Shown piece by piece: positions 2,594-11,500 of a stretch of DNA of 64,000 nt (the first letter of the stretch is position 1; every line of letters starts with the position of its first letter). The stretch comes from Pecten maximus. Its lineage: Eukaryota. Under the pieces are notes generated by a model that made no database searches, had not been told where the DNA came from, and saw only the letters and a list, made by a program, of their open reading frames with translations. The position numbers and the translations under genes were made by a program. Location: positions 37,510,001-37,574,000 of the forward strand of contig NC_047017.1 in assembly GCF_902652985.1 (NCBI RefSeq), given 5' to 3'.

Positions 2594-5500
2594 ATGGCGG
2601 AAGGCGTACGTGACATCCCGAACGAACACATCGTGTGTCAGTTGTGTGGGTCTCGCGATGACCTCCAGTTATGCAGTAGGTGTAAGACGACTTGGTATTG
2701 TAGTAAAGAACACCAAAAATATGATTGGAAGTATCACAAGAAAATATGCAAGAAAAAAACACACAACGACACTAAAACTAATGGTAGAAATGACGGCTTC
2801 AACATGACAAGCGCGGAATTACAAACCGGAGTGGGCGAGGTCAACAACCCTGGTATGGAATGTGTAGGACGTGACAATATCAGTGTATCACATTTAAAAA
2901 CAAACACATCATGTGGTTCATCAACACATGCGATAGAAGTTGCCAAAGATGTCAAAGACTGGACTGGTGAATCGGATTCTGCATCTCGTGGACCAAAATT
3001 AAATGTTAAGCTGCCTATGGACTCTGATGGGCAAAGTGGTGTACGTGAGAGCTCGGACATAGACGACAGGGATGTGGAAAACATGTCATTCCGTAGCATG
3101 GACTTGTCTGATAAGGTTGTTTCTACAGGTTCTTATTCGGAAAGTAACGATACATTTATCACAGAAGGTAGTTCGGAAACCTTTATTTTAGAATCTGACG
3201 ATTCAGCCTTGTGTAAGCCTGATTATAGTTCAAACAAATCCCAACATTCCGAGAGTGCAATGTACCCAAAAAGTGATGTAGACACCCGACAGACATACAT
3301 TTCTATTATTGAAAGCAGAAACAAGGCTGTGGCCCAGTATGTTGTTAATTGTCTCAATAAATATGGTATATGTGTGGTTGACAATTTTCTGGGTGAATCC
3401 AAAGGACAAGAAATCTTGGAAAATGTGCTGTCATTGCATAAGTTGGGGACATTTTCGGGGGGACAGGTTATAGACCAGTCCACAAAATCTACGAAAAGAA
3501 TACGTGGTGACATTATTACCTGGGTAGATGGAACAGAACCAGGCTGTGACGATGTCCAGTTTTTAATTTCCTCTGTGGATGCTGTGATTTTACAATGTGC
3601 TGGACAACTTGGAAACTTTGATATCAATGGGAGAACAAAGGTAATCAGTTTGTGGTTTTAGCAAAAACATAGCATCAAAACATATGCATGGGATTTAGGC
3701 CTAAAGATTTTAATGGGGAGATGAGTTCTTTAAAAAATAATAGTTCTTTAAATTGTAATACATAATTATTGAACATTATAAGCCTACAGTAAATATAAGT
3801 GCTTTACAAAATCTAAATAATTAAAATAACTATTACATTTTTACGGTTCATCAACAAAAGTCATCAGTGCCAATAAAAACATAAAACAAATTAAACTAAG
3901 TACACTCACTTTTACCAGGTATACTATTCAATGGGGAACATTAGTCAGTTACCGCCCCTGAATGGTATAATAGGTGGCGCTCTAGTTGTTGCGGTCCCAG
4001 TGTATTTCCGGTAAGTACACTTGAGATTGGTAAGAGAGTGGACGTAAAACCCGTTAAATGATCCAGCGGAGAGGATATGCCGAAAACGTGTTGCTGTGTC
4101 CCGTATTGTAGTGAAAGAGGGGGGCATGCATTCCCGAAGGATGAAAGACTCAAGTTATTATGGTTGTCGGCTATCAAACGAAACTCGTCGGAGAAAAGAT
4201 TCCAGCGGTGGACCCCAACAAAGTCGAGCGTCGTTTGTTGCGGTCACTTCAGTGATGCCGACTACAAAACAGAGACCTCATACGGTGAGTCATCGGCTTT
4301 GATGTTTCGATTATTGTTAATTTTGACGAATTCATCATGTTTCTGTAATGTTAAAGCTAGATGGTTTTGAAAACGCATACCCGTGTTTTCCCACCTAGGG
4401 TCTGGGTCGTTATCAATATCGGTACTGTGGCTATTATTAAACCCGTACATATGTATACAATGCAAGTCGAGTAACAAGCAATAGCAAAAGCAGTCATCGG
4501 TATTCTTATAAGCGTGTCCGCTTCTTGACCATCTGTTTTTTAATTATTCTATTTACAGTACGCATGCTCAAATCATGTATCAAGTATAGTAGATTCCTCA
4601 CCCATTCATAATGACCCAGCAAAAAAAATCTTTCACTTGTTTAATTTCAACATATATGCTGTTTACTGTTGTTGTTGTTTTATTTTCTTTTGTTTAATTT
4701 ACTTTTGTTTTGTTTCATGTCATGGCCGAGTCTAATGCAGCAACTACTAATGATCAAATCAAAATGAACTATATACTAGCCAAGCGTTCTGATAATATTG
4801 TTTGGATATATGTATAGTCATTTTGTTTGATTGATCTTACAACATTCAAGCTGCCGAAGGATGGATAGTATCATCTGATGGTGAATCTATTTGTAAACAA
4901 TGATTAAAGGGTAAGTTTTAACAGTTTGACCTAGAAACTATATCACGACAGCAACACTATAATCTTTGGCCTTTGTGAGGCATCATATCTGCATTATAAT
5001 GCTTGAATTATTGATATTACTCATGCATAAGCACACAATTTGATTTTGAAAAAAAAAATATTGGCTATGTTTATATTGTGTTGGATTTGATAAAAACAAA
5101 CATTTCTTAAAAAATCATTTTAATCAGTGGATGTATTACATGATTATAGCAAAAACTCAATCTTAGATGCCTTACTTTTAACTCATTTGATTAGCAATGA
5201 ATGAATATCAAATATTACAAAGACAATATCTTTTATACCAGGTACTTTACCATTGCGCAAGCAACTGAGGGATGGAGCTGTCCCAAGCATTTTTGCATGG
5301 AAACCAACAGAAAATTCCGGTCCCAGAGCAAAACGTCTGTGTGTACGAAATGCAGAAAAAGAATCTAATGGTAGATTTGTAATGAATGATTTTTTATATG
5401 ATAGTCGCTGTCCTTCTTCAGATGATCAAGAGGTGGAAATTGATCCTTCTAGTGACTTGAATGTTGCTTATGAGGAGTGTGTTACTGACTCATCTCTATC

Positions 5501-8500: not shown

Positions 8501-11500
8501 AGTGATCATTGTATCCTGGAATATTTCGGTATTGCTGTGGACGTGGATCAAAATTTACACATTTAACAGACTCTTTTGCAAGTGGAAGTTCACTGGCCTT
8601 GATTGGGCTTCCATGGTAGGGCTTTGTTTTGTGAAATGATTGTAGTTTTTGAGTACAAGTTTCCTCTGTAAATACTTCCTTAGTAACTGAAAATCTATGG
8701 CATGCAAAAAGAACAGCACAAACATGTTTACAGTGGGCTTTCGGACCCATGCCAGCTGCACATTCACACTGTCCCTCAACCACACAACCCTTCTTGTCAA
8801 TACATACATCTACAACATATGATACACTTTTCTTCATTTGCGCACGGCATTCAGATCTTATGTAAAAGCTGTCAGCCTCTGATGCCAAACGTAAATATTT
8901 GAGAAATCGATTTGAGTACAAATCTTTAGCGTCACTGTCTATAGTCTTTTGTAGTGGAAGGAGATATGACTCTACTGCCTCTAATGTCAAGTTTGTGAAA
9001 TCTGTGTCTTGGTTAATATCTCTATAACTCTCGAAACCTGGCACACTCATACTAAATTCAGGCTCTAACTCTTCACGACCAAAATCTTTGTTTCTATCAT
9101 ACGCCTCAAGTCTGAAACATGCAAATTAGAATATATATTATACATGCAACTATGTATAGATTTTTATGGCTCACAAGCTAAAAGTTGACCCTCACATGTC
9201 TAATGCTATTTTCATTTGAGCTGATACATGATCCTATTTGAAGTATAAAAATAATCTAAATAAAATTTAACAATGTAATTAAATTATCTTCACTTTACTG
9301 GAGTTGGTCATCAGTGTTTACAAGTGTTGAAGTAATAAAACAATATCAAACACAAATATATTGTTTATTTATATTGTACAGTTATCAGTATCCTGCAGTG
9401 AAATAGGAAAAGTGGTTGGAACTCAATGACGATTATTCCGGCAAATTCATAGGCCTTTCAAATAAGACTAGCTCACAAATTTAGGCCTATAGTATATAAT
9501 CGCCTTAGGGCCACGCCACTATCGTATCGTTTTGTAAACACGTAATATGTCTACCCTACGATAGATTATAAACATGTAATTTTTTACAAAACGAATTATA
9601 TTGACGTGGCCCTGTGAATCGACGAACGAGAATCCGTTATTTGTTTACATTACAATAGGAATAACGGACTTTACAGGATGACGGACGGACACTGGACTTT
9701 CATTATATAATTTTACATTTATATTTGAAACCATTAAACGATGACCGATCACAAAAGATTTAGACCAGTGCGGTATAACAAACCGGGGCTTCACGGTAAC
9801 GTAACGTTCACGTAATGGACTAGCCGATCCGACAGTTTACAATGCAACGTAAAATAAAACGAACCTCTCAATCAATTCATTCTTTCGACCAGATACACGA
9901 GCTCCACGGGTTCGCAACTCCTTCCTTAGCTTTGGAAGGTCCCACGATCCATAGGATAAGGGTTTACTCAAAGACATAATTATCGATAGATATATATGAT
10001 CACTCTAGAGGTCGTTGACATTCAGATTTCGCGGAATGTCAGGACCGCAACGTACTGTGCGCCACCTATAATCAGGGGAGTTAACTCTAAATGAATTCCT
10101 ACCGATGTTCCCCATTAAACTAATTGTAATTTGATGGCTAAACAATGAACAAAACAGAAATAACAATAAAATAATAAGATACAAATTATTCTTAACAAAT
10201 AAGATCAATAAAAAAATCAAATGAATCATTTCTTTTTCTAAAAAATATATAGAGAGTGAAAAATGTTGAGTCTCTTAATTATGAAGACCAATTAAATGCT
10301 CTGTCCAAATTGCCAAAAGGGTTTTTGATAACCAGCTTTAGTGACAGAATATGTATATATATATATAACATCAGGTATTTTTCCTGGTTTAAACAATGTT
10401 TGTAATATAATTTGATAAACAGGCAGAGGATACTACACAGGTATTCACATCTAGATCCTGTTTCACGCTGTGAATATTAAACAGTAATTATATAATCTGT
10501 CCGTGCTGCTAGGTCTATTTCAGATAATTAAAAGATTTAAAGAAAGAAATATAGCTTTTGTCATTTCTGACAGAATAAAATTTAACTTGTACTTAATAAT
10601 TATTAATGACTAGCTATATATATGTATAGGCTATGTAATTATATATGCCATACCATCAACACCATTCTTGCATGTTTGCCATATTTATTAGTTTCCAGAG
10701 ATTCAAGTGTTCAGCTTCAACTTCCATCATCTTATCATTACATTAATCACTTCTGGAATCTGGTACTAGTGTCAGTACCAATCTGGAATCACTATCATTA
10801 TGATCATGATCATAAGTGTTCTAAAAAATTTCGTTGTTTTACAGCCAGTACCATTTTGAAATGTATTGTTTATTGAATTATTATCAGCACCGTTCTAAAT
10901 TTAAAATGTTTATTGCATTACTGTCAGCACCGTTCTAATTATAAAATGTTTACTGTATTACTGTCAGCACCGTTCTAATTATAAAATGTTTATTGTAGTA
11001 CTGTCAGCACCGTTCTAATTATAAAATGTTTATTGTAGTACTGTCAGCACCATTCTAATTATAAAATGTTTATTGTAGTGCTGTCAGCACCGTTCTAATT
11101 ATAAAATGTTTACTGTATTACTGTCGGCACCGTTCTAATTATAAAATGATTATTGTATTACTGTCAGCACCATTCTAATTATAAAATGTTTATTGTAGTA
11201 CTGTCAGTACCGTACGGCCCGCGTTCTAATTATAAAATGATTATTGTAGTACTACCAGCACCATTCTAATTATAAAATGTTTATTGTAGTACTGTCAGCT
11301 CCGTTCTAATTATAAAATGATTATTGTATTACTGTCAGCACCATTCTAATTATAAATTTTTTATTGTATTACTGTCAGCACCATTCTAATTATAAAATGA
11401 TTATTGTAGTACTGTCAGCACCATTCTAATTATAAAATGTTTACTGTAGTACTGTCAGCACCATTCTGATTATAAAATGTTTACTGTATTACTGTCAGCA

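Follow-up and report, generated by a model that had tools for sequence, protein, structure and literature searches.

Is the two-gene DNA transposon found in an intron of an EGLN-like gene of Pecten maximus a complete and possibly mobile element, and what might its nuclease contribute to transposition? The locus lies in a stretch of 64,000 nucleotides from contig NC_047017.1 (NCBI RefSeq assembly GCF_902652985.1, positions 37,510,001 to 37,574,000 of the forward strand). This whole stretch is called the window, and all positions are counted from its first letter. The element is an ISL2EU element that occupies positions 3933-10113 of the window (6181 bp). It carries a transposase gene and, on the opposite strand and tail to tail with it, a gene for a nuclease. 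With a probability of roughly 85%, it is read here as a young full-length ISL2EU element, inserted into intron 1 of the EGLN-like gene in the orientation of that gene. It is a young further member of ISL2EU with an architecture that has already been published, not a new mechanism. The initial annotation of the window had described a structurally intact two-gene ISL2EU element, and this description is supported: all exons of both genes are open, both termini are present, and AT flanks both ends.

Termini, Target Site, and Host Gene

The terminal inverted repeats are imperfect and about 80 bp long. Both ends of the element start with GGGGAACAT in inverted orientation, and the alignment of termini revealed conserved blocks inward of these tips, which extend over about 80 bp and are broken by indels. 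The left repeat (3933-4012, plus strand, extent approximate), with the tip GGGGAACAT, was recognized by terminus alignment and inverted-repeat search. Its conserved blocks after the tip are AGTTA.C.CCCCTG, AT.ATAGGTGGCGC, and GTTGCGGTCC. The right repeat (10034-10113, minus strand, extent approximate) was recognized by terminus alignment. The GG-starting tip GGGGAACAT is present at both ends of the window copy and of a second full-length copy on chromosome 5, and the tips are mutated in older copies.

The flanking letters, caAT/element/ATTa, correspond to an AT duplication within AATT. Comparison of the flanks among copies placed the left duplication at 3931-3932, with an A before it (target A/AT/T), and the right duplication at 10114-10115, with a T after it. 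Among the element copies compared, the five distinct left ends are all preceded by AAT, and the three distinct right ends are all followed by AT, with T as the next base in two of the three. The termini and AT flanks proposed in the initial annotation were confirmed at the same coordinates. The first ~50 bp of the right flank (10122-10172) matches 13 further places in the genome with 85-91% identity, a possible sign that the element inserted into or beside a short repeat.

Two exons encoding conserved domains lie on either side of the element. The upstream one is exon 1 of the host gene (2594-3640, plus strand), which encodes a MYND finger and the start of a hydroxylase domain and ends with ...INGRTK before a GT donor. 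Pfam zf-MYND matched the open reading frame 2594-3640 with the e-value 4.1e-11. The next host exon (13067-13198, plus strand, limits approximate) encodes a 2-oxoglutarate (2OG)-Fe(II) oxygenase domain with RHVDNP, which was matched by Pfam 2OG-FeII_Oxy_3 with the e-value 6.3e-8. The presence of a MYND exon on one side and a 2OG-FeII_Oxy_3 exon on the other places the element within intron 1 of an EGLN/PHD-like gene. The vertebrate oxygen-sensor protein has this pair of MYND and prolyl hydroxylase domains, and by the domain pair the host gene is a putative EGLN ortholog. An insertion inside an oxygen-sensor gene had been claimed earlier, and the flanking domain exons support insertion in an EGLN-like gene. 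The transposase strand is the same as the strand of the host gene. For the host, the element is thus a 6.2-kb sense-oriented insertion in intron 1.

Copies and Recent Transposition

The assembly searched for copies includes 918,306,378 bases in 3983 contigs. A second full-length copy was found on chromosome 5 (G000:C5:11626838-11632922), and it is ~99.5% identical to the window copy. Its similarity ends exactly at ctAAT/ on the left and /ATTgt on the right, and the flanks differ. Both reading frames are open in this copy as well. Between the two copies, the transposase shows 2 non-synonymous changes, while the nuclease main exon shows 3 synonymous and 0 non-synonymous changes, and the chromosome-5 copy lacks 90 bp of the nuclease intron (9416-9505). 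The high identity, the different flanks, and the open frames together indicate recent transposition. It is plausible that the element is still mobile, which agrees with the initial annotation, where it was called potentially active. An assembly duplicate was considered as the origin of the second copy and ruled out, because on either side the similarity breaks off precisely at the AAT and ATT junctions.

Apart from these two full-length copies, the genome search found a handful of fragments. The older copies C3714, C19, C17, C12, C13, and C35 have frameshifts or truncations. The C3714 copy is a mosaic in comparison with the window copy: the identity is 92-97% from ~6000 to the right end, only 66-80% over 5300-5800, and 71-90% over the left end. 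This pattern suggests either that lineages have exchanged sequence or that the N-terminal linker of the transposase changes fast.

The Transposase

Every search, fold, and estimate of the ratio of non-synonymous to synonymous substitution rates (dN/dS) was made on single exons. Exon 1 of the transposase gene (4077-4284, plus strand) contains 69 codons and 1 base and encodes a THAP zinc finger, and it is followed by a GT donor at 4285. Pfam THAP matched 4077-4283 with the e-value 4.9e-10. The main exon (5242-6479, plus strand, stop codon included) encodes the end of the THAP domain with the AVPSIF box, the helix-turn-helix (HTH) domain HTH_Tnp_4, and the catalytic domain DDE_Tnp_4. On 5244-6479, Pfam HTH_Tnp_4 was matched with the e-value 1.1e-12, and Pfam DDE_Tnp_4 with 3.9e-36, over profile positions 1-158 of 158. 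The catalytic residues D243, D318, and E365 are invariant in all 17 aligned transposases. The closest annotated protein to the transposase exon is the uncharacterized protein LOC117327155 from P. maximus, with 99% identity.

The Nuclease

The nuclease gene is encoded on the minus strand. Its exon 1 (9866-9977) starts with ATG at 9977, contains 37 codons and 2 bases, and encodes a SAP DNA-binding motif; Pfam SAP matched minus-strand 9977-9867 with the e-value 9.3e-8 (32 bits; the cut-off is 23.9). The predicted intron (9112-9865, minus strand) has a position that agrees with paralogues and homologues. The main exon (7641-9111, minus strand, stop codon included) encodes a SWIM-type domain at residues ~38-146 and a YqaJ/lambda-exonuclease domain at residues ~250-480 of the exon translation. 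Pfam YqaJ matched minus-strand 9110-7641 with the e-value 3.3e-19.

The window protein was aligned with 31 homologues (32 sequences in total), which show 39-53% identity; wherever a source is named for a homologue, it is a mollusc. The residues S369-P370-D371 and K383 and the SWIM ligands C115, C117, C127, and H129 are invariant in 32/32 sequences, and E381 and R280 are conserved in at least 90% of them. In the hidden Markov model alignment, S369-P370-D371 and E381-I382-K383 align with S117-P118-D119 and E129-L130-K131 of lambda exonuclease, and R280 aligns with lambda R28, the residue that binds the 5'-phosphate. The profile of the 32 sequences matches LHK-Exo (3syy, e-value 1.2e-18), lambda exonuclease (1avq, 2.1e-13), and mimivirus R354. 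The AlphaFold model of the nuclease has a mean predicted local distance difference test score (pLDDT) of 83, and the score exceeds 90 over most of residues 240-480. With this model, Foldseek retrieved 3sz4 (e-value 1e-10, template modeling (TM) score 0.77 over the target) and 1avq (4.3e-9, TM score 0.66 over the target). By alignment, the nuclease has a complete active site of the lambda-exonuclease type. The initial annotation had also called the PD-(D/E)xK motif complete, and D371, E381, and K383 indeed fall on lambda D119, E129, and K131.

The label SAP-SWIM-YqaJ given to the protein earlier is valid for SAP and YqaJ through Pfam, while SWIM is indicated through its motif and a structural match instead of a Pfam model. 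The motif CxC...CxH, which corresponds to the SWIM ligands CxCxnCxH, is present (C115, C117, C127, and H129). The Pfam SWIM model gave no match for residues 60-165, even at e-values up to 10. The N-terminal part was folded alone with a mean pLDDT of 78, and residues 38-146 of the predicted fold match residues 110-214 of the ZSWIM8 chain 9rwz_M (Z 9.4, root-mean-square deviation 2.5 Å, 98 aligned residues, 21% identity); the next-best row has Z 4.9. This stretch of ZSWIM8 is presumably its SWIM finger. The chain 9rwz_M is also the top match of Foldseek for the SWIM-type part, with the e-value 0.056. The SWIM assignment is supported by the motif and the predicted fold. Among the 31 aligned homologues, 13 bear Pfam SAP, and four homologues are named "SWIM-type domain-containing protein" in UniRef.

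Selection and Co-inheritance of the Two Genes

Measured against the C3714 copy, which belongs to an older subfamily, the transposase exon has a dN/dS of 0.17 and the nuclease main exon one of 0.21. The linkage of the two genes was analyzed with genome tables in which 87 of 396 nuclease candidates and 101 of 588 transposase candidates were scored. After merging, 81 nuclease loci were scored, and 52 of them have a DDE_Tnp_4-type match within 6 kb. These neighbors are convergent at 42 loci and divergent at 10 loci, and no tandem pair is present; the divergent genes are 409-666 bp apart. The other 29 loci, without a transposase neighbor, are an upper bound, given the fraction of transposase candidates scored.

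The pairwise distances of the two genes are correlated across the 6 families with both genes among the loci analyzed (r 0.83), and only one of 720 permutations reaches this r. For this test, L060 was counted within the L044 family, and loci without at least ~190 aligned residues of both genes were excluded. At the sequence level, both genes were shown to be under purifying selection and co-inherited across families. Neutral decay of the nuclease gene, which the initial annotation had named as an outcome that would refute it, is rejected by the dN/dS of 0.21, the invariant active site, the linkage to a transposase gene at 52 of 81 loci, and the co-inheritance at r 0.83.

The genome contains many distinct ISL2EU families with two gene layouts, and in several multi-copy families of near-identical members both frames are open.

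Transcripts and Splice Junctions

The phases at 4284/5242 and 9866/9111, as read from the sequence, are compatible with splicing in both genes. Annotated homologues support both predicted junctions through colinearity of sequences. The Argopecten protein P0122 (495 aa), which has THAP and DDE in one chain, is colinear with exon 1, a G, and exon 2. The SAP-bearing homologues of the nuclease are continuous across its predicted junction in the alignment. The contig-derived nuclease homologues start at the junction R, after a few residues of pyrimidine codons, as expected from an unspliced acceptor. For the P. maximus RefSeq paralogue P0020 of the nuclease, the first 30 residues have no match in the genome, and the match starts at residue 31. 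Of the five other full-length paralogous matches, four start at residue 33, which corresponds to the nuclease junction, and one starts at residue 32.

The element or a part of it is present in 20 runs from 10 studies, and the contigs of the runs X1, X5, X6, and X8 were compared with positions 4000-9999 of the window. Only X5 is on record as RNA, and X1 holds RNA too, because a spliced joint is visible in it. Run X15, of organism B, holds 0.91 of the sampled words of the element, more than any run of organism A.

Several observations weigh against the reading given at the start. The initial annotation had described two convergent spliced open reading frames with no stops and with complete DDE and PD-(D/E)xK motifs. 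The open exons, their convergence, and the motifs stand, while the junctions were not confirmed in the contigs: the joint from 4284 to 5242 and the joint from 9865 to 9111 were each found in contigs of 0/4 runs, with the limit that RNA contigs lose rare isoforms and an unseen joint is not a shown absence. On the nuclease side, the contigs continue unspliced across 9111 in 4/4 runs and across 9865 in 3/4. Splicing to the acceptor at 5242 is visible in X1 and X5 (2/4), from a donor at 4910 instead, with the joint from 4909/4910 to 5241/5242 and GT..AG boundaries. The extra exon defined by these contigs (4844-4910, plus strand), which is spliced to 5242, reaches back at least to 4844 in X1 or 4824 in X5, and each of its three frames is interrupted by stops. 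In RefSeq, the sister copy is modeled as a protein of 365 aa with an internal Met start, without THAP. A search of the assembly for an empty site with the 600-bp flanks found the left flank only at its own locus and the right flank at its own locus and in ~50-bp repeats; no alternative haplotig with an empty site is present in the assembly.

The THAP exon stops at 4284 in the contigs of X1 and X5. In the X5 contig, 4284 is followed by 17 unmatched letters and then by 4824, while the X1 contig has a loose end at 4284 with at least 30 letters that are not in the genome. Neither the 17 letters from X5 nor the 30 letters from X1 match anywhere in the window and the element loci, and a search of the entire assembly that allowed 2 mismatches did not find the 30-mer after 4284 in X1 either. 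The contigs of X1 and X5 carry variants of the chromosome-5 copy, including those at 5719, 6394, 6678, 7845, 7938, 8751, and 9111.

These data are the basis for the alternative that the element is no longer mobile, and that the two copies are relics whose transcripts are non-productive or represent host pre-mRNA and read-through. No productive junction was seen in four runs, a stop-bearing extra exon was seen, the contigs extend over the region between the two genes and over parts of the intron in the nuclease gene, and only two full-length copies and a handful of fragments were found. Against it stand the open frames of both copies, the synonymous-only changes in the nuclease main exon (3, with 0 non-synonymous), the perfect termini and duplications, and the loss of rare isoforms from RNA contigs. 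The alternative is considered rather unlikely.

With the reading of a young and plausibly mobile element, the extra exon could be a splicing gate on the output of the transposase. Since the sampled transcripts mostly contain the stop-laden extra exon, full-length transposase may be produced only rarely or only in some tissues.

Two further parts of the element are noted here. The intergenic stretch between the convergent genes (6480-7640) is covered by RNA contigs, and in X6 and X8 the contigs over its portion at 6800-7199 reach a very high depth, which suggests a further common repeat nested there. Genome matches revealed a nested common repeat of ~120 bp in the transposase intron (4477-4600), with many matches genome-wide at 87-95% identity and a very high contig depth in X6.

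Proposed Mechanism and Role of the Nuclease

In the proposed mechanism, the THAP-HTH-DDE transposase would bind the conserved blocks of the ~80-bp termini, excise the element, and insert it at AATT with a 2-base stagger, leading to the AT duplication. The SAP and SWIM modules would tether the accessory nuclease to DNA or to a partner, and the nuclease would act on the 5'-phosphorylated ends left by DDE cleavage. By resecting the broken donor site, it could direct the repair to homologous recombination, by which the element would be copied back and its copy number increased. Such donor-site resection, steering recombinational copy-back, is tentatively proposed as the most likely step for the nuclease, with a confidence somewhat below even. 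Two points speak against a role in donor repair: enzymes of the lambda type initiate at double-strand ends, and the element does not encode an annealing protein.

A catalytic need for the nuclease is opposed by related systems. In the available parts of the sources, native transposases of Spy transposons from the same superfamily are reported as active (PMC11304231), and Harbinger elements are reported to need only a Myb-like DNA-binding partner (PMC9179366). From these data, DDE enzymes of the superfamily can finish cut-and-paste transposition without a nuclease of their own. It is considered rather unlikely that ISL2EU is a true two-enzyme eukaryotic transposon in which the SAP-SWIM-tethered nuclease is required, either for trimming the 5'-phosphorylated ends or for donor resection with a net gain by recombinational copy-back, and the transposase is gated by the stop-laden exon in a manner similar to the P element.

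By analogy to the logic of TnsA/TnsB in Tn7, the nuclease might be a second catalytic subunit of the transposase, where DDE cuts the 3' ends and PD-(D/E)xK cuts or trims the 5' strand; without the nuclease, excision would then fail or turn replicative. The complete and conserved PD-(D/E)xK active site and the stable co-inheritance of the two genes are consistent with this arrangement, as is a lambda-exonuclease-like nuclease in the unrelated KolobokE lineage, which the available text of PMC9587614 describes. On the other side, Spy (PMC11304231) and Harbinger (PMC9179366) of the same superfamily transpose without a nuclease, as far as the available text of these reports goes, and the nearest structures, LHK-Exo and lambda exonuclease, are processive exonucleases and not site-specific endonucleases. 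A second-subunit function is considered improbable.

It is similarly improbable that the second protein is mainly a DNA-binding or recruiting partner acting through SAP and SWIM, like the Myb-like protein of Harbinger, with a secondary or regulatory nuclease: SAP and SWIM are conserved (SWIM ligands in 32/32 sequences, Pfam SAP in 13/31 homologues), the SWIM-type fold is supported by the predicted match to ZSWIM8, and the Harbinger partner binds terminal repeats and transposase according to the available part of PMC9179366, but the conservation of the catalytic residues equals that of the SWIM ligands, which argues for selection on catalysis, and the transposase has THAP and HTH modules of its own.

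The element is a good experimental substrate. Two almost identical copies are available, both with open frames and with precisely defined termini, and the target is known. The active site of the nuclease is mapped (D371, E381, K383, and R280), and its N-terminal part with SAP and SWIM is defined. Were the nuclease necessary, the element would be a eukaryotic transposon bringing its own end-resection enzyme, and this would bear on how cut-and-paste elements gain copy number.

Comparison with Known Systems

The nuclease shares with lambda exonuclease and LHK-Exo the fold, the catalytic D, E, and K, and the arginine aligned to R28. It differs from them by ~250 extra N-terminal residues, which include SAP and SWIM, and by the lack of an annealing partner encoded in the element. 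Tn7 is similar in combining a DDE enzyme (TnsB) and a nuclease of the restriction-enzyme fold (TnsA), and this likeness is a functional analogy only; TnsA is an endonuclease cutting 5' ends at defined sites. The P element encodes a THAP-bearing transposase regulated by splicing. The likeness to it includes the N-terminal THAP and the transcripts whose splicing blocks the full-length transposase, while the catalytic family is different and only 2 runs have contigs with the extra exon of the window element.

The KolobokE lineage of Kolobok is also a group of DDE transposons with a PD-(D/E)xK lambda-exonuclease-like nuclease, a likeness by description only, from the available part of PMC9587614. 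PIF/Harbinger elements encode a related DDE_Tnp_4 transposase, and they also have two genes and an accessory protein with DNA-binding modules. The partner protein of Harbinger is, however, Myb/SANT-like and without a nuclease, and the Harbinger duplication is 3 bp; this Myb-like protein binds the terminal repeats and the transposase (available text of PMC9179366).

The closest system is ISL2EU of the PIF/Harbinger-ISL2EU-Spy (PHIS) superfamily, to which the element was assigned by traits: it has the same domains, a second open reading frame with YqaJ, the AT duplication, and the GG termini. In the available parts of the publications (PMC4482050, PMC4122938, PMC9179366), ISL2EU is described with a DDE/HTH/THAP transposase, a second open reading frame with a YqaJ exonuclease domain, an A/AT/T target, and termini starting with GG. 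The novelty implied by the initial annotation does not hold, as the pairing of THAP/HTH/DDE with YqaJ, the A/AT/T target, and the GG termini have been in print since 2014-2015. Its remark that a role of YqaJ in transposition had not been shown is consistent with PMC4482050, which in its available text stated in 2015 that the function of the second open reading frame was unknown. No functional test of the ISL2EU nuclease was found in the literature search, supplements aside. In their available portions, the published descriptions do not mention SAP or SWIM modules in the second protein. At 6181 bp, the window element is longer than the published mean of ~4840 bp given there, because of its introns and nested repeats. 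Every ISL2EU trait tested is present in the element: the DDE domain, THAP and HTH, the second open reading frame with YqaJ, the A/AT/T target, and the GG termini.

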